Shown here piece by piece: positions 3,703 to 63,336 of a stretch of DNA of 64,000 nt. The stretch spans positions 1-64,000 of the IMG/VR virus record IMGVR_UViG_3300036770_007495; one strand, written 5' to 3'. The translations under genes and the position numbers were made by a program. The notes beneath the pieces were generated by a model. It worked only from the letters and a program-made list of their open reading frames with translations. It did no database searches and was not told the origin of the DNA. Every line of letters begins with the position of its first letter. Position 1 is the stretch's first letter.

Positions 3703-4610
3703 TCAGAAATTTCCAGGAGCTACTTGAAGGCACTTGAGGCCGATTTCACGCCACATATCCACAACCTGCTGCCTATCGTCCAGAACAAATTCCACATCGA
3801 ATTTATCCTTGATGAGAGTATCATAGATTTCCTTCTTAACAATGGAGTCTCGACGATGATCACCTTCTTTGCGCATCATGAGATCGTAATAAGGAACCTT
3901 GTGTTTGTCAAGCCATGCAAGAGTCTTTTGACGGCAGACTTCGGTGCCTTCACGACCAGATACAATGAGAATAATATAACCTTTCTTTTGAAAAGCTTCA
4001 ACAATGCCATATACAGCAACATCCAAATGGTCTTGATCAACTTTGTCGTACTCAAACCAGTTGCGATCGCAACGATGCGCAAGAGTACCATCAATGTCTA
4101 CAATGATGGTGTTGCCTTTCTTGTTGACAAGTGGTACATCTTGCAGAGTTGGAAGAATATACCGCTGGTGCATGCCCTTGATGACCTTTTCACCAACAGG
4201 CTTGGCACGCAAAGAGTCGCGATGCAAACACTCGTCAAGAGACACATCCAAGAAGTCCTTGTACTCAACAGAGATGTTGGTGGTAAGATACTTGCACTCA
4301 TGCTTGTATCGCTGATCATCAGCAATCTGCTTCATGCGTTCAAAGTGCTTGTCTTCAAAGTTGGTGTCATCAACAATGATGGTTTCAATGCCACGAGCAA
4401 GCCACATGTCAACAAGAGCATAGCATCACGTGCATCAAGGATTAGCTGCTCATTGATCTTGGACCAAATGCCTGCATCAATCATGTCACGCAAGTCATCC
4501 TTGTTGACACGCTTCACCTTGCCATTGCTCTTGGCAACCTGCTCCTTGCTCCAAGTCGACTTGCCGCTCGCAGGCAGCCCGCGAGTCAAAATGATTTTCT
4601 GCTTCTTCAT
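3703..4610 (-). pseudogene. pseT: Polynucleotide 5'-kinase/3'-phosphatase (T4 PseT-like), split by a 5-bp duplication
   Basis: P-loop GLPASGKST and RVNKDDLR in ORF 4332..4610; VDDTN, DIDGTLA (HAD), SGR, DDRQQV in ORF 3703..4407; removing one AGCAT at 4417-4426 fuses the frames. Confidence 0.88.
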
Positions 4611-11094: not shown

Positions 11095-11140
11095 AGACAA
11101 AATATTAAATCTGGCATTTATGCAGCATAATTCACCTAGC

Positions 11141-12238
11141 ATGACACTACCAACACTCTATTCTCGCACCAGCACAGGTGCCATTCAAAAATGGTTCATT
11201 GAAATCTGTGATGATGCATATCGCACCATTTATGGTCAAGTTGATGGCAAGTTGCAGTCAACAGAGTTCACCATTTGCAAGCCCAAGAACGAAGGCAAGG
11301 CAAATGCTACAACTGGTGCAGAGCAGGCTCTCAAAGAAGCCAAGGCTTTGTGGAAGAAAAAGAAAGACAGCGGATGTTTTGAAGACATCAACGACATTGA
11401 CAAAATGTTGTTTACAGAGCCCATGCTTGCCAAGAAGTATGAGGATTATGCAGATGAAATCGAATTTCCTGTCTATTCTCAGCCCAAGCTGGATGGCATT
11501 CGTTGCATTGCTCGCAAGGATGGTCTTTGGAGTCGCAATGGCAAGAAGTTTGTTAGTGTGCCTCACATTGAACAAGCACTCAAGCCAGTGTTTGAATTAC
11601 ATCCCAATCTAGTTTTGGATGGTGAATTGTATTGCGACAAGTTCAGCAATGACTTCAATGCCATTTGTTCTCTGGTCAAAAAGACCAAGCCAACGGAGCA
11701 AGATTTGAAAGACTCTGCAGCAAGCATTCAGTATTGGGTGTATGACTCTGATGTCAAAAACAAATTCCGTCTGCGGTTTTATGATGTTGTGCAAAGCACA
11801 ATTGACATGGTTGCAAGTGACTTTATTCGTGAAGTACCAACCGAGTTTGTGCAGAACAAACCTTATCTTGATTCATTATACGAGAAGTACATCAATGAAG
11901 GCTATGAGGGTCAGATGGTGCGCCTTGACAAGCCATATGAAAACAAACGCAGCAAAAGCCTGCTCAAGCGCAAAGAATTTCAGGACAAGGAATACACTAT
12001 CCTGGATGTCATTGAAGGTGAAGGCAACCGCTCTGGTGGCGCTGGTGCAATGACATTTGAGAACGAGCAAGGCACACGATTCAACAGCAACATCAAAGGC
12101 TCTCGTGAGTATTGTGCACAACTGCTGCGCGAAAAAGATCAGCTCATTGGCAAGCAGGCCACTGTCAAGTTTTTCAATCTGACACCTGACAATGTGCCCC
12201 GCTTCCCGTTTGTAACAGCAATCCGTGACTATGAGTGA
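11141..12238 (+). CDS. ATP-dependent DNA ligase
   Basis: EPMLAK, QPKLDGIRC, LDGELY, YEGQMVR, YENKRS..LLK.K, PRFP. Confidence 0.95.
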   Translation: MTLPTLYSRTSTGAIQKWFIEICDDAYRTIYGQVDGKLQSTEFTICKPKNEGKANATTGAEQALKEAKALWKKKKDSGCFEDINDIDKMLFTEPMLAKKYEDYADEIEFPVYSQPKLDGIRCIARKDGLWSRNGKKFVSVPHIEQALKPVFELHPNLVLDGELYCDKFSNDFNAICSLVKKTKPTEQDLKDSAASIQYWVYDSDVKNKFRLRFYDVVQSTIDMVASDFIREVPTEFVQNKPYLDSLYEKYINEGYEGQMVRLDKPYENKRSKSLLKRKEFQDKEYTILDVIEGEGNRSGGAGAMTFENEQGTRFNSNIKGSREYCAQLLREKDQLIGKQATVKFFNLTPDNVPRFPFVTAIRDYE

Positions 12239-12863: not shown

Positions 12864-12897
12864 TTGACTGTCTGCAGATTTGCATTATAATGAATGC
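12864..12897 (+). promoter_or_regulatory. Sigma70-like early promoter, leaderless
   Basis: TTGACT-N16-TATAAT-N6-ATG. Confidence 0.8.
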
Positions 12898-14082
12898 ATG
12901 AACAATTATCTTGCTCAACACTTTTGGAACTACGAAACCAATTGCATTGATGGTCTGAAGCTGTGGAGTGCTCTGCAGCCGCACATTGCAAAAGGTGAAC
13001 TCATTGTCAACGAAGGCAAAGGTGATCGCGAAGGCCTCAAGCTTGTAACCTATTCCAAGACCTATCAGTACGAACACAATTCTGTTGCATGGGATCCTCT
13101 TGTGCAGCATTGCCGCGGCATCATCTTTGATGCAACTGATGACTACAAGATCGTAGCTCTTCCCTTCTCCAAGTTCTTCAACTATGGTGAAGGCGGCATT
13201 CATTATCCTTCCGCTGGTGCTGAGATTGAACAGGTTTGGACCAAATATGACGGTTCACTGTTCATCATCTTTCATTGGAAAGATAAGTGGCATGGAACTA
13301 CCCGCGGATCACTCAATTCAGATATTGGACAGGTGGGTCAGCAGATTCTGGATAGCTATGTGCACAATGGATTGGTTATGCATCGAGATTACACTTATCT
13401 TGCAGAGTTGATTTACAAGGAAAATCAAATTGTTGTAAATTATGGTGATGATCGCAAGCTTGTGCTGCTTGGTGTGCGTAATCGTTATGCAGGCCATGTT
13501 TATATGCCTGATTGGATCATTGATCGCTTTCATGGTGGATTGACAATTAAGCCGTTTGAAGTTGCTCGTCGTTGGAAATTTGCAAACAAAGAAGAAATGC
13601 TTGCATGGCTCAACCAAACCAAAGGTACTGAGTTTGAAGGCTTTGTGGTGCACTTCTCTGATGAAACTGTTTTCAAGTTCAAGTCTGAAGACTACATGCG
13701 TCTGCATCGCATCATTGCTCAGTTCACGTTCAAGCGTGTGCTGGAAGCTGTGCAGCTGCATCAAGAAGAAGAAATTCGCAAGGCATTGCCAGAAGAGCTC
13801 ATCCCTGAATTCGATCGTTACAAGTGGATGATTGAAGACAAAGTGGACAGCATCATTGCATATGTTGACAAGATTGTGCACAATGCTCCAAAAAGCTCTC
13901 GCAAAGAGTTTGCACTTTATTTGCAACAGTATTACAAAGGTACAGATGCAATGAAGTATGCATTCAAGTACATTGACTTTGAAATGAACGTTGACAAGCT
14001 TGGCGAGCACATTTTGCAAAGCTTGCGCCGCGATGACTTTGAAGTTGCAGAGGACAAAAACAAAGATGATATTGATTCATGA
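12898..14082 (+). CDS. RNA ligase 1 (T4 RnlA-like)
   Basis: CRGIIF, PFSKFFN, KYDGS, TRGS, FEGFVV, KFKS.DY..LHR. Confidence 0.9.
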   Translation: MNNYLAQHFWNYETNCIDGLKLWSALQPHIAKGELIVNEGKGDREGLKLVTYSKTYQYEHNSVAWDPLVQHCRGIIFDATDDYKIVALPFSKFFNYGEGGIHYPSAGAEIEQVWTKYDGSLFIIFHWKDKWHGTTRGSLNSDIGQVGQQILDSYVHNGLVMHRDYTYLAELIYKENQIVVNYGDDRKLVLLGVRNRYAGHVYMPDWIIDRFHGGLTIKPFEVARRWKFANKEEMLAWLNQTKGTEFEGFVVHFSDETVFKFKSEDYMRLHRIIAQFTFKRVLEAVQLHQEEEIRKALPEELIPEFDRYKWMIEDKVDSIIAYVDKIVHNAPKSSRKEFALYLQQYYKGTDAMKYAFKYIDFEMNVDKLGEHILQSLRRDDFEVAEDKNKDDIDS

Positions 14083-14470: not shown

Positions 14471-15331
14471 ATGATCGAAATCATTGCACACAGTACAAAC
14501 AAGCCCATTGCTTACGAACATTTCTTCTTCGGTGGTGGTGAGCAACACATCAAGCTCAATCAGAAGGATCTTGCAGATGCTTATAGTGCAACCATTTGGC
14601 TTCATTATAGCCAGGATTCAGACATTTGGAAGTTGGCATTGATTGTTGATGCGCTGCGTCGTGCTGGTATTCACATTCTGCACCTCAATATTCCTTACTT
14701 CCCTGCTGCTCGTCAGGATCGTGTTTGTGTTGCTGGTGAGCCTCTGTCTGTCAAAGTGTTTGCAGACTTCATCAATGCCATGAAATTCAGCCGTGTGACC
14801 ATTTTTGATCCTCACAGCGAAGTCACTCCTGCTCTGCTTGAAAATGTCAAAGTCGTTGACAATGCGCAGTTTGTGGGTGCAGTCTTGGGTGAGCTCAATG
14901 CACTTGATGGCACTGGCAAAACTGTGCTGGTGTCTCCTGATGCAGGCAGCAACAAGAAAGTCGCCAATGTTGCCAAATACTTGTACAACATCAGCGGCAA
15001 AGAAGTTGCTGTTGTGCGTGCTGACAAGCTGCGCAATGTTGCTACAGGTCAAATCATTGAGACCACAGTTTATGCAGATGATTTGACTGGCAAGAATTGC
15101 TTCATCATTGATGACATTTGCAGCAAGGGCGGAACGTTCTGTGCATTGGCCAAAGTGCTCAAAGCCAAAGGTGCTGCACAAGTGACTCTTGTGGTGTCTC
15201 ACTTTGAAGGTACTGCTGATATGCGCATTCTCAAGGAGTCTGGCATTGATGAAGTCATTACCACTGACAGCAAGCCCTTTGTGACTCGCAACAACAACCT
15301 CATCATCAAGAGCATCAAAGCATTCATGTAA
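14471..15331 (+). CDS. PRPP-synthetase-like protein (Adps-like ADPR-PP synthetase)
   Basis: F.GGE, PYFPAARQDR, DPHS, VSPDAGS, IIDDICSKGGTF. Confidence 0.9.
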   Translation: MIEIIAHSTNKPIAYEHFFFGGGEQHIKLNQKDLADAYSATIWLHYSQDSDIWKLALIVDALRRAGIHILHLNIPYFPAARQDRVCVAGEPLSVKVFADFINAMKFSRVTIFDPHSEVTPALLENVKVVDNAQFVGAVLGELNALDGTGKTVLVSPDAGSNKKVANVAKYLYNISGKEVAVVRADKLRNVATGQIIETTVYADDLTGKNCFIIDDICSKGGTFCALAKVLKAKGAAQVTLVVSHFEGTADMRILKESGIDEVITTDSKPFVTRNNNLIIKSIKAFM

Positions 15332-15388: not shown

Positions 15389-16855
15389 ATGAACATCAAT
15401 CCTGCATCTCTCATTGACGGCTACAAAGTCGGCCACATTCATCAGTATCCCAAGAATACTGAAATCATCTTCAGCAATTTGACAGCACGTTCCACCCGCC
15501 GTCTCAACACTGACAAGGTGGTTTTCGCAGGCCTGCAGTACTTCGTCAAAGAGTACCTCATCAAGCAGTGGAATGAAAACTTCTTCCACAAGCCCATTGA
15601 AGAAGTCGTTCACAAGTTCAATCGTCGCATCAACAATTACATTGTACCTAACAATGTTGGTGATCAGCACATTCGCGACCTGCACGAGCTTGGCTATCTG
15701 CCAATTGTAATTCTTGCTCTGCCAGAAGGCACTGAACATCCCATCAAGGTGCCAAGCCTTGTCATCTGGAATACAGATGAGCGCTTTGGTTGGCTCACCA
15801 ATTATCTGGAGACCATTCTGTCCACCAGCATCTGGGGCCCTTGCACCAGCGCCACTACTGCTCACCAGTACAAAAAGTTGCTCATGAAGTATGCTGCAGA
15901 GACTGTTGGTGATACCAGCTTTGTTCAGTGGCAGGGTCATGACTTCAGCTTCCGTGGCATGTATGGTCTTGAAGCTGCTTGCATGAGTGGCGCTACTCAC
16001 CTCTTCAGCTTCACGGGCACTGACACTGTTCCTGCTATCGACTTCCTTGAACAGTACTACAATGCTGACAGCGAGAAGGAACTTGTTGGTGGCAGCGTTG
16101 CTGCAACTGAACACAGCGTCATGTGCGCTGGTGGTGCTGACAATGAGATTGGCACTTTCCGTCGTCTGATTCATGATGTGTATCCGACTGGCATTGTGTC
16201 CATTGTGAGTGACACTTGGGACTACTGGAACACCATCACCAACATTGCTCGCGAGCTCAAGGATGAAATCATGCATCGTGATGGCAAGGTTGTCTTCCGC
16301 CCCGATACTGGGGATCCAGTCAGGGTTGTCATTGGTGATGAAGATGCTGCAAAAGATTCACCTGAATATAAAGGCTCCATTGAATGTCTTTGGGAGGTCT
16401 TTGGCGGCAAGGTGAACGCCAAGGGCTACAAGGAGCTTGATCCGCATGTGGGTCTCATCTATGGTGACAGCATCACGCTGGAACGTGCTCAGCAGATCTG
16501 TGAAGGTCTCAAGCGCAAGGGCTTTGCCAGCACCAACATTGTGTTTGGCGTTGGTAGCTACACTTACCAGTATGTGACTCGTGACACTGATGGCTATGCA
16601 GTCAAGGCAACCTATGCCAAGATTGATGGTCAGGATAAGGAAATCTTCAAGTCTCCCAAGGGTGCTGCATTCAAGAAGAGTGCCAAGGGTCTGACTGCTG
16701 TCTTCAAGGATGCTGATGGTGAGTTCTACCTCAAGGATCAGGCCACTTGGGATGAAGTTCACAACTGCGAATTCGTTGAAGTGTTTGCTGATGGTCATGT
16801 CGTCAAGGATTATACTCTGCAGGAAGTTCGCAACAACCTGGCTCAATACGTCTAA
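15389..16855 (+). CDS. Nicotinamide phosphoribosyltransferase-like protein (Namat-like)
   Basis: DGYK.GH..QYP, HDFSFRG, ATEHSVM, VSDTWD, RPDTGDP, IYGDSIT, KKSAKG. Confidence 0.93.
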   Translation: MNINPASLIDGYKVGHIHQYPKNTEIIFSNLTARSTRRLNTDKVVFAGLQYFVKEYLIKQWNENFFHKPIEEVVHKFNRRINNYIVPNNVGDQHIRDLHELGYLPIVILALPEGTEHPIKVPSLVIWNTDERFGWLTNYLETILSTSIWGPCTSATTAHQYKKLLMKYAAETVGDTSFVQWQGHDFSFRGMYGLEAACMSGATHLFSFTGTDTVPAIDFLEQYYNADSEKELVGGSVAATEHSVMCAGGADNEIGTFRRLIHDVYPTGIVSIVSDTWDYWNTITNIARELKDEIMHRDGKVVFRPDTGDPVRVVIGDEDAAKDSPEYKGSIECLWEVFGGKVNAKGYKELDPHVGLIYGDSITLERAQQICEGLKRKGFASTNIVFGVGSYTYQYVTRDTDGYAVKATYAKIDGQDKEIFKSPKGAAFKKSAKGLTAVFKDADGEFYLKDQATWDEVHNCEFVEVFADGHVVKDYTLQEVRNNLAQYV

Positions 16856-32256: not shown

Positions 32257-33249
32257 ATGAAATTAGCTTCTATTGAACTCATCTCTGACATTCAGCCTCA
32301 TCCCAATGCTGACAAACTGGACCTAGCCAAAGTGCTGGGCTACACATGCATCATTGAAAAGGGTAAATACAAAGTTGGTGATGCTGTTGTGCTCATTCAG
32401 CCTGATACTGTGCTGCCTGATGAATCTTGGGCTGAAGTCTTTAAGAAGAAGTCCAATAGGGTGAAGGCAATTCGCTTGCGTGGTTGTTGGTCATTTGGTA
32501 TTGTTATGCCTGTAGCCACATTCTTTGATGATGTGAAGTCTGTAATGGATTTTGCACCAGGCACTGAAGTATCTCATCTCATTGGCGTTACCAAGTACGA
32601 AGCTCCTCAGCCTCAGCAGCTGGACGCCAAAGGTCACTTGCCTTTTGGTCTGGGCAAGACTGATGAAGAACGTTATCAGAACATTCTTGACTTGCCATTT
32701 GGTGAGGTGGTTGATGTGACTCTCAAGATTGATGGTCAGAGTGCCACCTACTACTGCCACAAAGACAGGCAGACTGGTGAATGGACTACTGGCATCTGTT
32801 CTCGTTCCCTTGAAATGAAGCCAGAGTGCAGCAACAACTATACTAACATTGATCGCAAGTATGGTATTCTCAACAACCTGCAAGACTACTGCAAGTTCCA
32901 TGATGTGAGTTTGGCTCTGCGTGGTGAAATCTACGGCAATGGCATTCAGGGTCATGGCAACAACCCTCATGCCAAGATGCCTCTGAACTTCGCAGCGTTC
33001 AGTGTTTACAACTTTGATACCTTCCAGTATGAAAATGCTGGCGATGAACATTATTATGCCAATGTGTGCCATCGAATTGGCATTCCTGTTGTGGACCATG
33101 TTGAAAAGGCAGTTCTAACTCCAGAGCTCATCAAGCACTATGCTGAAGACATCTCTGAAATCAATGGTCGTGCCTTTGAAGGTGTGGTCATCAAGCACAG
33201 CACAGGGTCGTTTAAAATTATCAATATGAGCTACGATGAACGCAAATAA
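32257..33249 (+). CDS. RNA ligase, DRB0094-like family (N-terminal OB domain)
   Basis: KLASI..I..I.PHPNADKL, KTDEER.QN, KIDGQS, GEIYG.GIQ, FEGVVIK, SFKII. Confidence 0.85.
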   Translation: MKLASIELISDIQPHPNADKLDLAKVLGYTCIIEKGKYKVGDAVVLIQPDTVLPDESWAEVFKKKSNRVKAIRLRGCWSFGIVMPVATFFDDVKSVMDFAPGTEVSHLIGVTKYEAPQPQQLDAKGHLPFGLGKTDEERYQNILDLPFGEVVDVTLKIDGQSATYYCHKDRQTGEWTTGICSRSLEMKPECSNNYTNIDRKYGILNNLQDYCKFHDVSLALRGEIYGNGIQGHGNNPHAKMPLNFAAFSVYNFDTFQYENAGDEHYYANVCHRIGIPVVDHVEKAVLTPELIKHYAEDISEINGRAFEGVVIKHSTGSFKIINMSYDERK

Positions 33250-41118: not shown

Positions 41119-41529
41119 ATGCCCAACGAAAAGAATACCAAGTTCACCGCCGCCATGACCTTCAACACCGACAAGGTGGTGATTCAGGACCTGCGCGACA
41201 AGTGCAACCTCGGCGAGAAGGAGATGATGCGCGTCATCCTCAGCGTCGTCAACAACCATGAAGCGGAACTCATCGAGGCCGCCGCCAAGTTCATCGCTGA
41301 TGAGAAGGCTGGCATCGAGGCCGCCAAGCAGGCCAAGAAGGCGGAACGCGAGGCTGAGAAGCTCGAAGCCAAGCAGAAGCGCGAGGCTGAGCGTCTGGCC
41401 AAGAAGGCAGAACGCGAGCAGGAGAAGGCGCAGAAGGCTGCTGCCAAGGCCGCTGCCAAGGCGGAGAAGGAAGCTGCCAAGGCTGCGGAACTGGCTGCCA
41501 AGGCCAATGCTGAACCGGTGGAAGCCTAA
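41119..41529 (+). CDS. Ala/Lys/Glu-rich protein (histone-H1/TolA-like tail)
   Basis: AAKAAAKAEKEAAK repeats; GC-rich codons; AAAGGA RBS; own promoter and terminator. Confidence 0.75.
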   Translation: MPNEKNTKFTAAMTFNTDKVVIQDLRDKCNLGEKEMMRVILSVVNNHEAELIEAAAKFIADEKAGIEAAKQAKKAEREAEKLEAKQKREAERLAKKAEREQEKAQKAAAKAAAKAEKEAAKAAELAAKANAEPVEA

Positions 41530-41552
41530 TCCACAACCAACACCAACCATTG

Positions 41553-41583
41553 AAGGCTCCAAGGCAACTTGGAGCTTTCTTTG
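41553..41583 (+). terminator. Rho-independent terminator
   Basis: AAGGCTCCAAG-GCAA-CTTGGAGCTTT + T tract. Confidence 0.7.
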
Positions 41584-41626
41584 TGTTTCTATTTGCATTC
41601 AAGTGCTTTTGCATGTATATTGTGTT

Positions 41627-42109
41627 ATGAATAAACCACTTAAGACGGCTTCTTTGGCTCAAGCACTTGAAGCTTATGCATCTGGAACCTTTGTTTACAA
41701 CAATCCATGCAGCATCTGCGGCAAGCAATGTTCCACACCCACCATGGAAATTTGGCTGCGACGCATTCGCGAGTTTCATGGCATTGAGCAAATGTATCGT
41801 GAATACAAATGTCGCAACTGCCGCAAAACGGAACCTTTGAACATCAAAGCTGCAGAGCCCATGCACAATGTTGCAGTGGAACCTCTCAAGGATGCTTGTG
41901 TGCCGGTGTTGCAGATGCAGGCCAAAAAGAAGCCACAACAGCCAACACCAGTGCATCAGGAACCGCCGCAACCCATTAAACGCACTCCTCGCCCCGGTGA
42001 TGCAGTCAAGCACCCCCCTGGTTGTGTGGGCATTTCCGTTTGGGAAACCAACATCAATGGTGAATTGGAATATCGTGGCACTCAATGGACAAAAATTTTG
42101 AAAGATTGA
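41627..42109 (+). CDS. Zinc-finger-containing hypothetical protein
   Basis: CSIC...CRNC; leaderless. Confidence 0.55.
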   Translation: MNKPLKTASLAQALEAYASGTFVYNNPCSICGKQCSTPTMEIWLRRIREFHGIEQMYREYKCRNCRKTEPLNIKAAEPMHNVAVEPLKDACVPVLQMQAKKKPQQPTPVHQEPPQPIKRTPRPGDAVKHPPGCVGISVWETNINGELEYRGTQWTKILKD

Positions 42110-44199: not shown

Positions 44200-44445
44200 T
44201 GCATGGTTCCAATTCTAATGGAACCCATTGATAGTCAATGCATTATGCACATTACAAAATAAAGATCTATATACAGACCTCTCGTGTACCCAGGTGACAC
44301 GAGCCGGCATCGGTTCCTAATGCAGATGGAACCGTTGAGACTCAATGACTTATGTCAAAATGTACACTAAAAGATGTCTATTAGATGTCTTGTGTCACCT
44401 GGGTACACGAGCCGGTATCGGTTCCTAGTGCAGTTGGAACCATGG
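44200..44445. repeat. Three ~107-108-bp tandem units with palindromes
   Basis: GGTTCC-N9/10-GGAACC at 44205, 44312, 44420; CTCGTGT/ACACGAG hairpin at 44281 and 44389. Confidence 0.8.
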
Positions 44446-45049
44446 TGATGAGATCATCGTGTGGTGATCATGAATGCATCATCTTGAGTTCCCCTTGTTG
44501 ATTTGAGAAGTTTGCAAAGAGATGTTGATGTTGCGCGCGGAGCATGTATTGTATCAACATGGATAAGATCAAACTCGCCGCTGCTCTCTTGAAGTTCTTT
44601 GCAACGCAAGAGTGTGAGGAACTCTCCGACTTGGTTGGCTACTGCAATGCCAATTTTGATCCTGCAAGTCTCGATTACAAGGAACAGATGCAGGACCTGC
44701 AGCATCGGTTTGAGTTTGTGGCACAAGACATCATCAAAGAAATCTCATGAGCGCTCCCATCATCAAGATCCCTGTGCATGGAATGCACATTCACGAGTTG
44801 CTGCAGCGGCTTGGCGACCCTGCAGAGGGGTTCAAGTTTACGCTCAAGATCAAACGCAACAAGCGCTACAAGCTGCGTTCGTTCCGCATGCTGTCGACGT
44901 CGCAGCGGCATTGCGAATGCTGCGGCAATTATGTGATGACCGGCTTCAGGAACTCTCGTCGAAGCTTTCACTTTGATACACATTTTGGCATTGGCTACGT
45001 GAACCCACAAAGCATTTGCTAATTTGCAGGAACCTGTTACATTGATGCT

Positions 45050-47889: not shown

Positions 47890-48244
47890 TGTTGCATGAC
47901 TGACGAACAATGCCCCACATGCGGATGCACCATTGGTGGTGGGTGCCCACAAAGCACTCAAGAGGAAATTGAAGCATACAAGCAACGCCATCCTGAAGAG
48001 CAAGATGATGAGGAACTCATTCTCTCTCATTAATCTGAATGATGATTTGAGAGACACTACCAAACATATTGGAAGGTAGAAGAGGAGCTCAAAATGAGCA
48101 GATGAGGTTGTGCATCTCATCTGCTCACCTCTTCAACATCCCCTTCTGGAAATGAGGAATGCATTTTGAGATGATGGCGCAAAATGGCGAGCTGGTTCCT
48201 TCTTTTTTAGTTGAATACTTCAAAATTGATGCTATTATAAGAGC

Positions 48245-48481
48245 ATGAAAGAAAAGATTATTGCATTCATTTTTGGGGATGGTGAGGTTGAAAGCAAGAT
48301 TTTTGGGCAGGAAGATGTGGAAGTGTGGGAGAGGGGTATGGGATGGGGATGTGTGAGTTTGGATGATGTGGAATTTCGAATTGTGGATGATGTGGTGATG
48401 GTAATGGGAGAGAGTGTGGAGAAGGTGAAGGAAGGGGTGAAGAAGGTGAAAGTGTATGATGCGGAACAAGATTATGGATGA
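48245..48481 (+). CDS. C-depleted small acidic protein
   Basis: 7 C in 237 nt; leaderless promoter; starts MKEK. Confidence 0.55.
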   Translation: MKEKIIAFIFGDGEVESKIFGQEDVEVWERGMGWGCVSLDDVEFRIVDDVVMVMGESVEKVKEGVKKVKVYDAEQDYG

Positions 48482-48939
48482 TGTGGCAAAATAGGAGCAT
48501 TAATGTGATGCATTAAGTGCATGAATGGAGTGAGTTTCCCATTCATGGGAAATGCATAATGCAGGCACACTCATCTTCATCATCACCCTTCATACTTCAA
48601 GTGGAACCTTTTTTGTGATGCTGGCATCTTGCTCGTTTCCGGCAGCATAAAATATTTTATTTTTAAGTTGATGATTCTCTATCAGCATCTATAATGTTGG
48701 TATGGAGAACGAACTCAAAAATAAATTGAAAGAAGTGGAGCAACAAATTCAAAATGTCCAAAATTTTGGATATTGCCGGGAATGTCTCGACATTTTGGTG
48801 CAACAAAAAGAGTGGCTGGAGGGTCTGATCGCCAATTTTTGCGAATAAAACTTGAAAGGGAAAGGCAGCTAAAAGGCTGCCTTTCCCCCCCCCCCTTTTT
48901 TTTATTTGATTAATTAGTGGGGTGAGGTATAGTGTGAGT

Positions 48940-49269
48940 ATGAAAGAAAAATTTAATTTTGAAGAGGATATGGATTTGGTGAAAGTGGAATTGATGGATG
49001 ATGGTGATTGGGAGTATTTGAGAATGGGAATTGGAGAGTGTGAGGGTAGGGTGTTTGTGGTTGATTTGGATGATAGTGGAGAAGAAGAAAGGGAAATGAA
49101 ATATGTGAAAGAAGGATTGAGTGTTGAGGATGTTTGTAAGATTGGAATTGAAGTGGGAGTGTTTGTTGATAGTAGTGAGTGGGGGTATGATGAAAGAGAT
49201 AAGGTGAGGGTGAAGATGGAGTGTGAGGAGAAGGATTGGGAGGAATTTTTTAGGAGGTTGAAGGAGTGA
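48940..49269 (+). CDS. Cytosine-free gene encoding a 109-aa acidic protein
   Basis: TTGATT-N16-TATAGT-N6-ATG; open 109 codons; no C on coding strand; no A/P/T/H/Q residues. Confidence 0.65.
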   Translation: MKEKFNFEEDMDLVKVELMDDGDWEYLRMGIGECEGRVFVVDLDDSGEEEREMKYVKEGLSVEDVCKIGIEVGVFVDSSEWGYDERDKVRVKMECEEKDWEEFFRRLKE

Positions 49270-49451
49270 AGGTGTGGTGGAACCTTCAAAAGAAGATGAG
49301 GAGGTGGTGATGAGAGTGTGAGGTTGGGAGGATGAGTGTGTGGTGATGATGGGGTGGTGTGGAAATGATGGGGGGAAGTGGTGATGGTGGCTGCATTTGC
49401 AGTTCCGCCTTTTTTTAGTTGATTACATCTCAAAAGAAGTTATGATGTTGT

Positions 49452-49652
49452 ATGGACATTAAATCTTATGACATCAACAAACAAGAATGTATCATCAACT
49501 TTCTTAATGTGGACAGAAAGGTGAGTTTTAGTGATAATGGGGATATTGATGTGGAACCCATTAATGATTTGAATGAACAGGAAGAGAAAGATTTGTTTGA
49601 TGAGATTTTGAATAGTGAAGAAATCAACAAACTCTTTCCTTACGACTCTTAA
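49452..49652 (+). CDS. Small acidic protein
   Basis: Leaderless promoter TTGATT...TATGAT-N5-ATG. Confidence 0.55.
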   Translation: MDIKSYDINKQECIINFLNVDRKVSFSDNGDIDVEPINDLNEQEEKDLFDEILNSEEINKLFPYDS

Positions 49653-49699
49653 AGAAGAGTAAGAGATGAGATGAGAGGACATCTTAATGATGTCCTTTC

Positions 49700-50420
49700 T
49701 TTTTGTTTGCAAATGGAACCAAATAGAATGAATGAGTGAGTGATGGAGTGGTGAGGAGGAGTGATGTAGAGGTGAGGTGAATGTGGAACCAAAAATGGAG
49801 GAGTGAAGGAGTGAATAGAGTGAATAAATGAAGGAGTGAATGAAGATGTTTCCTTTTGCAATTGGAACCAAAAATGTATGAGTGAATGAATGAATGAATG
49901 AATGAATGAATGAAGGAGAGGTGAGGAGGAGTGATGGAGTGAATGAAGATGTTTCCTTTTGCAATTGGAACCAAAAATGTATGAGTGAAGCTTTATGCTC
50001 AAATTATGCATAATGCAGATTAGATGTTGATGAGGATATGAGAAGCATTTATATTCATTCATGCACTCATTTCTGGAACATCTTTATGCCATCTGCTCAT
50101 CACTCATTATGTTGATGATGATGCTGGTGGAACAAATGAAGAGCATTAAGGTGAGCATTATGCTCATCATTCTCTTTTGCATCTGGAACCTTTCTTATCC
50201 TCTCTTTATCTCAATTGATGGTGAGGTGTGGATGAATGTTGTGATGAATGATGTGATGAATGATGAAATGGAACTCATGAATGATGGAGTGGTGATGAGT
50301 GAATGTGGTGAGGTGTGGATGAGTGATGTGATGAATGATGAAATGGAACTCATGAATGATGATGAGGTGATGAGTGGGAGGGTGAGTGGGAGGGTGAGTG
50401 AATGGCGTTCCGGATGAAGA
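49700..50420. repeat. G/A-rich non-coding repeat tract (candidate origin or genome end)
   Basis: 54-bp exact repeat at 49833 and 49936; (GAAT)7; duplicated GATGTGATGAATGATGAAATGGAACTCATGAATGATG; recurring TGGAAC. Confidence 0.75.
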
Positions 50421-58612: not shown

Positions 58613-59056
58613 GGGGGCGAACTGGCTTCGACTCAATTGGTTGATTCAGATTCGCATGCAGAGGTAGACTAGCTGGCCTCTATAAAAGCAAGTCAAAAAA
58701 CATAAACGCAGAAGACACTGAAGTCGATGCCCTCTTGGCGCAAGCTGAGTACATCTTCAACAATGCTGACGAATTCCTCGTCAACGAAGTTGAAATGGCA
58801 CTCGCTGCCTAAGCAAAAACAATGTTGGATCCTATTAAAAACATTGAGGCAAGCAATAGGTGGAGCTGAACAATGTATGCTCTTAAATCAAACATTGGGG
58901 TGATGTCAGACTCTTCACTGACATAGGTAGGCTCTAAAACTCAGGTTGATGCGCCATGCAAACCTTTTGCCAATGAAATTGCAAATGCATCCAAGCATGT
59001 AGACGGTTTGATGATGTTGATTGAACACAGGGGTTCGACTCCCCTCGCCTCCACCA
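58613..59056 (+). ncRNA. ssrA: tmRNA
   Basis: GGGGGCGAACTGGCTTCGAC 5' end; GGTTCGACTCCCCTCGCCTCCACCA 3' end; G3.U70; tag ORF 58708-58812 ending ALAA*. Confidence 0.95.
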
Positions 59057-62306: not shown

Positions 62307-62397
62307 GGAGAGAGCCCGGCTAGACGAGGAGCAATCTTGGAAAGATTGTAACACTTCGAAAGAGGTGTTAAGGGTGCGAGTCCCTTTCTCTCCTCCA
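62307..62397 (+). tRNA. tRNA-Ser(GGA)
   Basis: CAATC-TT-GGA-AA-GATTG; long variable arm; T-loop TGCGAGT; CCA. Confidence 0.8.
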
Positions 62398-62403
62398 TTT
62401 TAT

Positions 62404-62493
62404 GGGCAGTTAACTAGACAAGCGCGCTGGGACCGACTTGAAATCGGATCGAGGTCGAAAGGCCTTGGGGTGCAAGCCCTCAGCTGCCCGCCA
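62404..62493 (+). tRNA. tRNA-Ser(TGA)
   Basis: CCGA-CT-TGA-AA-TCGG; long variable arm; T-loop TGCAAGC; GCCA. Confidence 0.82.
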
Positions 62494-62499
62494 TTTTAT

Positions 62500-62574
62500 G
62501 CGGATATAATTCAGTGGTAGAATATCTCGTTGCCAACGAGAGTGTCGTCGGTTCAAATCCGACTATCCGCTCCA
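62500..62574 (+). tRNA. tRNA-Gly(GCC)
   Basis: Canonical cloverleaf, TCCA. Confidence 0.95.
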
Positions 62575-62655
62575 ATTAACCGTAGTGGAGAATCTACGGC
62601 ATAACAAAATCTCTTAGATTGCAGAAACCTAACAAAACGCTGCGCCTATTTCAAA

Positions 62656-62732
62656 CGGGATGTAGCTCAGCCTGGTAGAGCGCTTGCTTTGGGAGCAAGA
62701 TGTCGTCGGTTCGAATCCGGCTATCCCGACCA
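62656..62732 (+). tRNA. tRNA-Pro(TGG)
   Basis: Canonical cloverleaf, ACCA. Confidence 0.95.
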
Positions 62733-62934
62733 ATTTTGCGGAGCAGAAATGCTAGTGTGCGGCCGAAAGACTGATGATGCGGCGTTTCGGGTAAAACCTC
62801 GCGATCATCTCGCAAATTTAGATGTGGGTGAAAGTCCCAGAAGCATCACAGATGCTTGTTCCACGACGGGCTCTAAAGACTTGAACTGACAAGTGCAAGG
62901 GTGAGTGTAAAGGTACTCCCCACAAATTTCAAAT

Positions 62935-63009
62935 GCGGTGTAGATGTTAATGGCTGCACACCTGACTTCCAATCAGAAGGAGGGGGTTCGATTCCCCCAC
63001 ACCGCACCA
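62935..63009 (+). tRNA. tRNA-Gly(TCC)
   Basis: CTGA-CT-TCC-AA-TCAG; TTCGATT; ACCA. Confidence 0.88.
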
Positions 63010-63013
63010 ATTT

Positions 63014-63234
63014 TATCAGAAGGAAGTTGGCTTAGAAGCAGCCATCTATAATGAGTGAAGCGAAGTACGAGTCTCCAACATCAACGGCCTAGTAAGGTGA
63101 CTGTGATAATGCATGATGTATCAGAGTCAGATATTGGCTCATGCGTTGGATATCGTCTGACTGCGGATAGTAAAAGAGCACCCCGTAAATGGTAAGGCTT
63201 AATTCTTCTTAGGCGTAACAGCACACCTCTGATA
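63014..63234 (+). ncRNA. 23S rRNA GTPase-associated-centre (H43/H44) mimic with internal insertion
   Basis: GTTGGCTTAGAAGCAGCCATC and GCGTAACAGCACAC match the L11-binding domain; closed by TATCAGA/TCTGATA. Confidence 0.75.
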
Positions 63235-63242
63235 TATTTTAA

Positions 63243-63336
63243 GGATCCATGACAGAGCCTGGTATTGTACGTCCCTGCTAAGGACAGGTCAGCCCCTAAA
63301 AAGGCTGCGTAGGTTCAAATCCTACTGGATCCGCCA
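63243..63336 (+). tRNA. tRNA-Ser(GCT)
   Basis: GTCC-CT-GCT-AA-GGAC; long variable arm; TTCAAAT; GCCA. Confidence 0.92.

Follow-up and report, generated by a model that had tools for sequence, protein, structure and literature searches.

A cytosine-free gene and its surroundings

The stretch of DNA analysed here (the window) comprises 64,000 nucleotides, positions 1 to 64,000 of IMG/VR record IMGVR_UViG_3300036770_007495, and belongs to a 224.7 kb contig (Ga0310126_0000060) of an uncultured T4-like jumbo phage. On its + strand, positions 48896-49282 contain no C, and these 387 nt cover a promoter, a complete ORF and 13 nt after the stop codon. This is the longest C-free run in the window; the next longest, 103 nt, starts only five bases later (49288-49390), while no run lacking A, G or T exceeds 42 nt. 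At the C frequency of the window (0.206) the chance of such a run at a given start is 1.5e-39. The sequence-only reading, which had pointed to a complete gene and its promoter with zero cytosines on the coding strand, was therefore correct in what it observed.

The upstream border of the C-free unit (48854-48903) is formed by the terminator hairpin of the preceding gene (scored on the - strand, but the same palindrome on +), followed by a run of 11 C (48885-48895) and a run of 8 T (48896-48903). The promoter is sigma-70-like, with TTGATT (48906-48911), a spacer of 16 nt and TATAGT (48928-48933), and the ATG at 48940 lies 6 nt after the -10 hexamer, within the spacing of about 6-7 nt that marks leaderless bacterial mRNAs. 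The start site thus probably falls on the A of the ATG, giving a leaderless mRNA, as is inferred from this geometry alone. The same geometry recurs at 48211-48238, 48668-48695 and 49419-49446, and in 80 of 96 promoters of related loci. The ORF (48940-49269) has 109 codons plus TGA. At its composition the stop probability per codon is 0.10, so that the chance of the frame staying open is 9e-6; only 1 of 200,000 shuffles stayed open, and the other two frames hold 10 and 21 stops.

The first C's after the ORF are found in GGAACCTTC (49279-49287). GGAAC is the upstream element of the promoter class GGAA(C/A)-N5-TATAAT seen in related phages, so here it is probably the relic of a downstream promoter; the idea that GGAACC is a nuclease site was rejected because of this role in relatives. 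The C-free, G-rich tail that follows (49288-49390) has no credible ORF and leads into a terminator hairpin and T-run (49389-49413); it is probably the remnant of a former C-free gene and now serves as the 3' UTR. A comparison of this 3' UTR with that of L013, a related locus, involved two sequences too similar to each other to be informative.

A second gene is in nearly the same state: promoter TTGAAT, 16 nt, TATTAT (48211-48238), then 6 nt and an ORF of 78 aa (48245-48481) with 7 C in 237 nt (3%), 41% G and C at 0.03 of third codon positions (C3). Further downstream, 49653-50417 is a C-poor, repeat-rich stretch with several TGGAACC motifs, which includes (AATG)10 at 49873-49914, the C-poor second half of ORF 50061-50417 and a 75-nt tandem repeat at 50243-50401. 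It looks like a decayed or rearranged part of a former C-free island, and across 49653-50060 none of the 23 differences from L013 involves C. An Rfam search of 47.5-51 kb returned nothing. Depletion of C on the + strand is confined to about 48250-50400, with nothing comparable elsewhere in the 64 kb or in the next 10 kb of the contig. A gradual genome-wide avoidance of C is not seen in this phage, since its ordinary genes actually prefer C at third codon positions (C3 0.2-0.35), against 0.00 in the C-free gene.

The encoded protein

The protein lacks Ala, Pro, Thr, His and Gln and so is built from 15 amino-acid types. It is strongly acidic, with 35 D+E against 17 K+R and a pI of 4.3. Acidity is not a mere by-product of recoding, as C-containing homologues are acidic too. 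AlphaFold predicts an alpha/beta fold with confidence (pLDDT 92, pTM 0.84), but Foldseek searches with this model found no match with E below 0.5 in the PDB or in BFVD, and ESM Atlas gave only unnamed low-score look-alikes. Pfam and PHROGs searches with the protein, with C-containing and longer homologues and with 28 island proteins returned no meaningful hit, one protein giving a weak DUF1292 hit. A DNA search of the region and a tblastn search with the protein against 50,697 phage records found no match, single-sequence and alignment scans of IMG/VR returned only the contig itself, and a scan of 185,579 genomes found nothing. The suggestions of the sequence-only reading that this is an anti-defence gene, possibly a DNA mimic, remain guesses: the acidic character fits anti-restriction proteins of the Ocr, ArdA and Arn type, but sequence or fold similarity to a known mimic was not detected.

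C-free genes and islands in related phages

Homologues were found as more than 50 protein clusters from JGI, ENA, NCBI and Logan assemblies and one AACY contig, which excludes an artefact of a single assembly. Conservation of the ORF and of its C content had been named by the sequence-only reading as a test. Thirteen C-free orthologues differ at 227 nucleotide columns, needing at least 291 changes, and only one change creates a C. The window and L013 differ at 63 of 327 ORF positions, none involving C. Distant homologues, in contrast, have 11-18% C and normal amino acids. A tree of 63 family members needs 9 changes between the two states, of which at least 5 are forced by well-supported branches. 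A second family is free of A/P/T/H/Q in 24 of 26 clusters, down to 45% identity.

While the sequence-only reading saw one gene, the phenomenon is a class of genes and islands. Related phages carry C-free islands of up to 1.9-2.4 kb with 5-10 genes from about 27 unrelated families of small, mostly acidic proteins, each gene with its own promoter. The C fraction of genes is bimodal, with 48 genes below 1% and a sharp peak at 0%, and the bulk at 10-25%. In 63 unique low-C ORFs (picked as at most 2% C) synonymous choice is absolute: TTT 250 / TTC 2, GAT 501 / GAC 3, AAT 346 / AAC 1, TAT 264 / TAC 0 and ATT 311 / ATC 0, with Leu using only TTR, Arg only AGR and Ser almost only AGT (222, against 2 AGC and 2 TCA). 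Of the 38 residual C's, 26 sit at first or second codon positions, mostly in Thr, His, Gln or Ala codons. The set of C-free families differs between phages, and the same family can be C-free in one phage and normal in another while its neighbour is C-free (loci L029 and L035).

The constraint has the shape of the transcript. In the best-read island, that of the related locus L017 (1.7 kb), all spacers and 5' leaders are C-free as well, and the only C's sit in the GGAAC promoter element about 18 nt upstream of each start site. Runs end 4-29 nt after stop codons, and in L017 the last island gene has its first C only 4 nt after the stop codon. Island-gene promoters keep the C of this element as often (15 of 29) as promoters of normal genes (43 of 96). 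Promoter positions -17 to -13 are, however, also nearly C-free in island promoters (2 of 116 against 109 of 384), although they should not be transcribed from that promoter; this may reflect a separate promoter subclass, and the copies are few and not independent, so these positions do not fix where the avoidance of C starts.

Selection rather than strand bias or mutation

The alternative offered by the sequence-only reading, regional strand bias from ssDNA deamination or an R-loop origin, is not supported. It is true that the flanks within 48250-50400 are also C-poor. However, in orthologous loci the run stops at the gene borders, and neighbouring genes with the same promoter type have normal C. 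The missing C is replaced mainly by G, which rises by 19 points in the gene of the window, while T rises by 1.5 points there and by about 5 in L017. Where C-containing homologues have Q, P, H or A, the C-free members mostly have D, E, K, G or V rather than the products of C-to-T change, and the ORFs remain open. The footprint of an APOBEC-like deaminase or of transcription-associated hypermutation is thus absent. An R-loop replication origin of the T4 oriF/oriG type, in which a promoter is followed by a non-coding unwinding element, does not fit either, since the skewed stretch is a conserved open ORF, predicted to fold well, with homologues of normal composition. With this sequence variation seen in many independent assemblies, mutational bias or a sequencing or assembly artefact, such as converted reads, is already contradicted by these results and we regard it as very improbable.

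A different DNA-level cause has more in its favour but is still unlikely. A GC skew of 1.0 strongly favours R-loops, and a C-free displaced strand could not be attacked by a deaminase or a dC-specific nuclease acting on single-stranded DNA. Alternatively, a strand without C has no CpG, no GpC and no G/C-containing palindrome on either strand, so that restriction or modification sites would be removed from a segment that must work first. The avoidance of C at promoter positions -17 to -13, and in the window across the whole promoter, is consistent with such a view. On the other hand, the C at -18 inside islands is not avoided, although read-through polymerases would expose it, and the complementary strand is 25-40% C. 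The rest of the genome (224 kb) has normal composition, so that freeing 0.4-2 kb of sites gives little protection, the island lies at 49 kb of 224.7 kb and not at a contig end, and the conserved ORFs show that the region is not merely an origin. Cytosine hypermodification, hinted at by a 'thymidylate synthase' hit, was rejected because the gene is ThyX and not a dCMP hydroxymethylase.

What could make cytidine costly?

We consider it shown by the analysis that the gene is genuine, that natural selection has recoded the whole transcription unit so that the sense strand, and therefore the mRNA, contains no cytidine, and that it is one member of a patchwork class of such early genes; the constraint is on the nucleotide and not on codons or amino acids, as it covers synonymous sites, non-synonymous sites and untranslated parts from about the -10 box to just past the stop codon. 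The mechanism, the identity of the agent and the function of the 109-aa protein are matters of inference only, as are start sites, expression and timing, which are read here from sequence alone. The interpretation given by the sequence-only reading is, in this light, partly supported: the complete gene with its own promoter stands, but the proposed causes fare less well.

The main idea of that reading was that the mRNA could be made without CTP and so would resist CTP depletion or ddhCTP, the chain-terminating product of viperins. Such a hazard acts on single nucleotides, one hit at a time, which naturally explains the loss of every C from the start site to the stop codon and the bimodality, and these phages invest in nucleotide supply (PRPP synthetase, RNR, ThyX). 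The idea is weakened, however, by several features. The promoters have a consensus -10 TATAAT and, in the window, a -35 as well, which implies host RNA polymerase, and phages that rely on the host polymerase are given in the literature as a possible reason why viperins are less common in prokaryotes than in eukaryotes. Most prokaryotic viperins also make ddhGTP/ddhUTP, whereas the transcript is 40% G and the gene itself is 39% G and 30% U; the idea presumes a polymerase sensitive to ddhCTP and a host that carries a CTP-specific viperin. Most internal island promoters outside the group of related loci L019-L022 keep a C at -18 (for example 4 of 5 in L017 and 5 of 6 in the related locus L018); a CTP-starved or chain-terminated polymerase would stall there on the next promoter, and since A works equally well in normal promoters, A should have been selected. 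The first C only 4 nt after the stop codon of the last island gene in L017 also counts against it. No CTP-depleting defence was found in our literature search. We therefore regard CTP-independent synthesis as possible but rather unlikely.

Two further claims of the sequence-only reading can be dealt with briefly. Escape from endoribonucleases of the MazF type, which cut at ACA, does not account for the loss of every C whatever its context, and ACA is not depleted in neighbouring early genes (observed/expected 0.9-1.1). Independence from five tRNA families fails as an argument because non-coding spacers are C-free too.

Escape from Rho is another possibility, though a doubtful one. Rho loads on C-rich, G-poor naked RNA, its primary binding clefts bind 5'-YC and rut sites are C>G-biased, so that a C-free, G-rich transcript could not be loaded and would never be terminated prematurely. 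Isolated C's between cistrons would be harmless, as observed, islands lack intrinsic terminators, a G-free, C-rich 95-nt element that looks like a rut site lies just upstream of the island of locus L021, and phages fight Rho, for example through P4 Psu. However, escape should be complete once C falls to a few percent, yet selection clearly continues to the last C and gives up five amino acids. Normal genes in these phages already have C at or below G, and the proposal presumes a host that carries Rho.

A structure-free message appears still less likely. C is the only base that a coding sequence can drop, because ATG and all three stop codons lack it, and without G-C pairs the mRNA would be almost unfolded, which could allow faster leaderless initiation and translation (for example in the cold), avoid cryptic terminators and offer no double-stranded or structured RNA to RNase III or RNA sensors. 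The predicted folding energy is indeed -19 kcal/mol for the C-free ORF, against -80 to -88 for neighbouring genes of the same length and -74 when half of the G's are turned into C, and the leaderless design is widespread in these phages. But one or a few C's change folding very little, which cannot explain the purging of the last C's at the cost of Ala, Pro, Thr, His and Gln nor the sharp peak at 0%, and neighbouring leaderless genes with the same promoters are normally structured.

Our preferred reading, still tentative, is that every cytidine in these messages carries a risk after the RNA is made, through cleavage or base modification directed at C by a host abortive-infection or toxin enzyme or by a host-shutoff enzyme of the phage itself. 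A message with no C could not be hit, so that these proteins, presumably host-takeover or counter-defence factors, could still be made in a cell where C-containing messages are being destroyed. That a C lying between cistrons seems to cost nothing fits damage to finished RNA, and does not fit polymerase stalling or exposure of the displaced DNA strand. The genes sit in an early-type region of many one-gene units, and the phage carries an RNA-repair set (PNKP and two RNA ligases) and NAD salvage genes, which suggests an arms race with RNA-cutting and abortive-infection defences. On the other hand, no enzyme that cuts or modifies RNA at any C, whatever its neighbours, is known in bacteria or phages; known mRNA interferases read 3-7-nt motifs, some of which lack C. 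No C-containing trinucleotide is notably depleted in the ordinary early genes of these phages, so the hazard would have to spare them, or they are not needed while it acts. The variable membership of the C-free set between phages is also odd for a dedicated fail-safe set.

A broader form of this proposal, about as likely as not in our view, leaves open whether the process acts on C in RNA or on CTP. In it, three-letter messages encoding proteins of a 15-amino-acid alphabet would be a previously unrecognised expression strategy of phages, staying expressible while a cytidine-directed process, a still unknown host defence or a phage host-shutoff enzyme, disables all ordinary RNA; the islands would then mark both a new class of immediate-early or counter-defence genes and the existence of that process.

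Relation to known systems

Total, conserved and repeatedly evolved absence of one nucleotide from natural protein-coding genes has, as far as our searches show, not been described. It implies a strong agent that acts on single cytidines in phage-infected cells, and finding it could reveal a new defence or host-shutoff mechanism. C-free ORFs behind a promoter also give a simple compositional filter for finding a class of early phage genes in metagenomes. The genes show that proteins predicted to be well folded can be kept for long periods with only 15 amino-acid types, and they offer natural 'C-less cassettes' and a design rule for messages nearly free of secondary structure.

In the avoidance of restriction sites and palindromes by phages, the CpG or UpA depletion of viruses and the depletion of APOBEC targets in animal viruses, selection likewise shapes composition so that a host factor finds no target, at synonymous and sometimes non-synonymous sites, but those cases are statistical depletions of specific 2-8-nt motifs across a genome, while here one nucleotide is absolutely absent from selected transcription units only, at the cost of five amino acids. 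ACA-less mRNAs, as in the 'single protein production' system, stay translatable while MazF cuts all others, and a link of MazF to leaderless translation has been claimed, though it is disputed; such recoding keeps all amino acids and most C's. In element sparing, enzymes for assimilating an element are depleted in that element, so that a product can be made when one building block is scarce, but the shift is modest and statistical, whereas here depletion is total and confined to particular genes, and scarcity of CTP would be an assumption. The earliest-expressed phage genes that disarm the host, such as T7 gene 0.3 (Ocr), T5 pre-early genes and T4 dmd or arn, also encode small, often acidic proteins from their own strong promoters in fast-evolving mosaic blocks, but our searches found no sequence, family or fold similarity to any of them and none of those genes is known to lack a nucleotide. 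The C-less and G-less cassettes used for in vitro transcription let RNA polymerase work with only three NTPs and halt at the first occurrence of the fourth; those are artificial, short and non-coding, while the present one is natural, protein-coding, conserved and recurrent.

Confirmation of a cytosine-free transcription unit

The stretch 48896-49282 contains no C and, at 387 nt, is by far the longest single-base-free run in the window. The next longest, of 103 nt, begins five bases later, and runs lacking A, G or T never exceed 42 nt. At the window's C frequency of 0.206 the chance of such a run at a given start is about 1e-39. Within it we find TTGATT, a 16 nt spacer and TATAGT, followed after 6 nt by ATG, and then an ORF at 48940-49269 (109 codons plus TGA). 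At its composition a codon is a stop with probability 0.10, so that the ORF would stay open by chance with probability 9e-6; one of 200,000 shuffles stayed open, and the other frames hold 10 and 21 stops. The predicted protein has no Ala, Pro, Thr, His or Gln and a pI of 4.3. Low C on the + strand is limited to about 48250-50400, and ordinary genes of this phage prefer C at third codon positions (C3 0.2-0.35), while this gene has C3 = 0 and G3 = 0.42. The observation made in the sequence-only reading, a complete gene and its promoter without a single C on the coding strand, is thus confirmed in every detail.

The gene is flanked upstream by an 11-C run directly followed by an 8-T run (48885-48903), which lies between the upstream terminator hairpin and the C-free promoter. 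A similar C-run (CGCCCCCCTCC) closes the C-free islands of the related loci L017 and L018, described below.

Genomic context

The window is the first 64 kb of IMG/VR contig UViG_3300036770_007495 (224.7 kb), which belongs to a large T4-like phage with no close cultured relative. Its annotated genes include ThyX and a full RNA-repair kit, that is a polynucleotide kinase-phosphatase and two RNA ligases (one Rnl1-like, one Rnl2-like), together with an ATP-dependent DNA ligase (these four at 3703-4407 on the - strand and 12880-14082, 32257-33249 and 11120-12238 on the + strand). In T4 this combination counters host anticodon nucleases. PRPP synthetase and NAMPT sit side by side (14471-15331, 15389-16855), and a cytidylyltransferase-like gene, possibly NMNAT, lies just outside the window (locus L036 17436-17891, contig about 70.8 kb), which looks like an NAD-rebuilding pathway of the kind phages use against NAD-depleting defences. 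A Gp23-family fragment is also found just outside the window. A tRNA cluster is present at 62309-63336, and next to it ARAGORN calls a tmRNA (58613-59056) with tag peptide GAEQCMLLNQTLG, although this call may be spurious. An ORF at 41258-42109 with long T-free runs (41316-41438) encodes a repetitive Ala/Lys/Glu-rich protein.

The region 20-50 kb is a typical early region, with many small + strand genes, each with its own promoter and often a terminator. The -10 box sits exactly 6 nt before the ATG, as in the promoters at 48211-48238, 48668-48695, 48906-48933 and 49419-49446, which implies, from sequence geometry, leaderless mRNAs. The same arrangement is found in the related loci L003, L005, L008, L017 and others, and a phage early region that is almost wholly leaderless is unusual in itself. 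The motif TGGAACC occurs 21 times at 29177-50190 against 6.4 expected, and 19 of the 21 are on the + strand. At 44.2-44.45 kb (44275-44448) it forms GGTTCC-N9/10-GGAACC hairpins inside 108-nt direct repeats, together with a 23-nt inverted repeat, and this may be a structured RNA or a regulatory element.

Selection against cytosine in related loci

The 109-aa protein has 26 relatives in the 90% clusters and 50 in the 50% representatives. Of 72 family proteins, 27 have no A/P/T/H/Q, 11 have almost none and 34 are normal. DNA for 30 loci from independent assemblies (numbered with the prefix L) showed that orthologues of 44-85% identity have 0-1 C in 330-378 nt, while homologues of 38-56% identity (L007, L027-L030, L032, L033, L035) have 11-18% C. 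In L003 and L005 the C-free run (367 and 387 nt) coincides with the gene, and no other run in L003 exceeds 46 nt. Among 13 C-free orthologues, 227 nucleotide columns vary and at least 291 changes are needed, yet only one creates a C, which has a probability below 1e-13 even if only 10% of changes went to C. A tree of 63 family members needs 9 switches between the two states, at least 5 of them forced by well-supported branches, and in L029 and L035 the homologue is normal but the adjacent gene is C-free. The C-free ORF differs by 19% between the window (48940-49269) and L013 (676-1023), while the flanking 1.1 kb differs by only 2-6%, indicating allele exchange or fast diversification at this gene.

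The lost C is made up mainly by G (0.39-0.41 in the window gene against 0.22), with T up by only 1.5 points, and where C-containing homologues have Q, P, H or A, the C-free members mostly have D, E, K, G or V. This rules out simple C-to-T decay, and the regional strand bias offered as an alternative in the sequence-only reading is rejected. Mutational bias or an artefact appears very unlikely on this evidence.

Cytosine-free islands

The phenomenon is larger than one gene, since related phages carry C-free islands of 1929 nt (L021), 2362 nt with 5 C's (L018), 1686 nt with 5 consecutive genes (L017) and 1440 nt (L020), while L025 and L026 have two islands with about ten genes. The 63 unique low-C ORFs fall into 29 groups, of which about 27 look real and are unrelated to each other, and none hits a known family apart from one weak DUF1292 match. 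Synonymous choice in these ORFs is absolute, with TTT 250 / TTC 2, GAT 501 / GAC 3, AAT 346 / AAC 1, TAT 264 / TAC 0 and ATT 311 / ATC 0, no CTN, CGN or GTC codons and only two TCN codons. Of the 38 residual C's, 26 sit at first or second codon positions, mostly in Thr, His, Gln or Ala codons. A second family (L016 1144-1476) is free of the five amino acids in 24 of 26 clusters, down to 45% identity. The C fraction of genes in these loci is bimodal, with 48 genes below 1%, few between 1 and 9% and the bulk at 10-25%; since the loci were chosen around the homologue the proportions are biased, but the gap is real. No ORF lacks A, G or T, and C-free ORFs are always on the sense strand. The genetic code itself explains why only C can be dropped, as ATG and the three stop codons contain no C, and so this specificity does not prove that the agent is C-specific.

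The window itself contains a second gene in nearly this state, at 48245-48481, with 7 C in 237 nt. Downstream of the C-free gene lies a C-poor, repeat-rich stretch (49288-49390 and 49653-50417) that looks like the decayed rest of an island. The segment 49653-50417 contains (AATG)10 at 49873-49914, duplicated units of about 100 nt holding TTGCAATTGGAACCAAAAATG, and a 75-nt tandem repeat at 50243-50401 inside ORF 50061-50417. It is 89% identical to L013, and the 23 differences in 49653-50060 include none that involve C.

Promoter anatomy and possible mechanisms

In relatives almost every early gene is preceded by AAGGAA(A/C)-N5-TATAAT with no -35 element, whereas the window's phage uses TTGAYN-16-TATAAT. 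In 80 of 96 promoters in related loci the ATG follows 6 nt after the -10. In the L017 island all spacers, 5' leaders and 3' ends are C-free and the only C's are the C of GGAAC, about 18 nt upstream of each start site (inferred from the promoter geometry). That C is kept as often before C-free genes (15 of 29) as before normal genes (43 of 96), although A serves equally well. A C that lies between cistrons therefore seems to cost nothing, even though polymerases reading through from the upstream gene must cross it. No terminator hairpin can form inside an island. However, promoter positions -17 to -13 are also nearly C-free in island promoters (2 of 116 against 109 of 384), and these promoters may form a separate subclass, all 29 with a perfect TATAAT, many being copies of one another. 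The retained C fits a hazard that acts on finished RNA, where a hit between ORFs would be harmless, and it also fits Rho. It fits poorly with polymerase stalling or chain termination, because a stalled polymerase at -18 would cover the next promoter, and poorly with attack on the displaced DNA strand. DNA-level explanations, therefore, appear unlikely and rank lowest together with mutational bias or artefact.

Any mechanism has to explain why selection continues down to the last C and overrides amino-acid preference, why the constraint covers untranslated parts of the unit, why only some early genes are affected, with a set that differs between phages, and why lone C's upstream of start sites are tolerated. 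A post-transcriptional hazard on each cytidine, that is cleavage or modification of RNA at C by a host toxin or abortive-infection enzyme or by a phage shutoff enzyme, explains these four facts best, and it would also suit a phage that carries RNA-repair and NAD-salvage genes. We propose it only tentatively, as no such enzyme is known and neighbouring genes show no motif depletion. CTP-free synthesis, including escape from ddhCTP, would explain the total purge but is a less likely possibility, being weakened by the host-type promoter, by the 39% G content given that most prokaryotic viperins are promiscuous, and by the retained C at -18. Evasion of Rho is mechanistically sound, since Rho binds YC, and a 95-nt G-free, C-rich element with repeated CTTACTCAACT, its composition resembling a Rho loading site, lies directly upstream of a C-free island (L021 327-421; L022 about 740-830). 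However, evasion should already be satisfied at a few percent C, which makes this reading doubtful. Lack of mRNA structure is a real physical consequence of the missing C, with predicted folding energies of -19 against about -85 kcal/mol, but a single C matters too little to explain the purge and this explanation is also unlikely. The remaining probability belongs to something not yet thought of.

The interpretation in the sequence-only reading is thus supported in part. Its core inference, that the message is selected to lack C, is supported, while the agents that it named (CTP depletion or ddhCTP, and endoribonucleases such as MazF) and the suggested anti-defence and DNA-mimic roles are still only conjectures, the ddhCTP version being weakened. 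We regard the absence of C, its conservation and recurrence in relatives and the selection behind it as shown by the sequence comparisons, and the hazard on cytidine, the leaderless mRNAs and any role of the product as inferred.

The nearest concepts are viral motif avoidance (restriction sites, CpG, APOBEC targets), ACA-less messages resistant to MazF, laboratory C-less cassettes, and earliest-expressed anti-host genes such as T7 ocr. The present case differs from each of these in that a whole nucleotide is absent, absolutely, from selected natural coding units, across many families and repeatedly in evolution. Full-text literature searches found no description of natural cytosine-free phage genes, and one methods paper states that natural nucleic acids are mostly devoid of long stretches lacking one nucleotide (PMC6526412). 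The gene in the window is the visible tip of a wider phenomenon that, as far as we can find, has not been described.

Predicted structure of the 109-aa protein

AlphaFold2 on the family alignment gives a model with pLDDT 92 and pTM 0.84, with three helices and a sheet. A structure search found nothing in the PDB or BFVD that matches below E = 0.5, and there is no Pfam or PHROG family, including for longer homologues. The family is acidic in C-containing members too, and a role as a DNA mimic is neither supported nor excluded.
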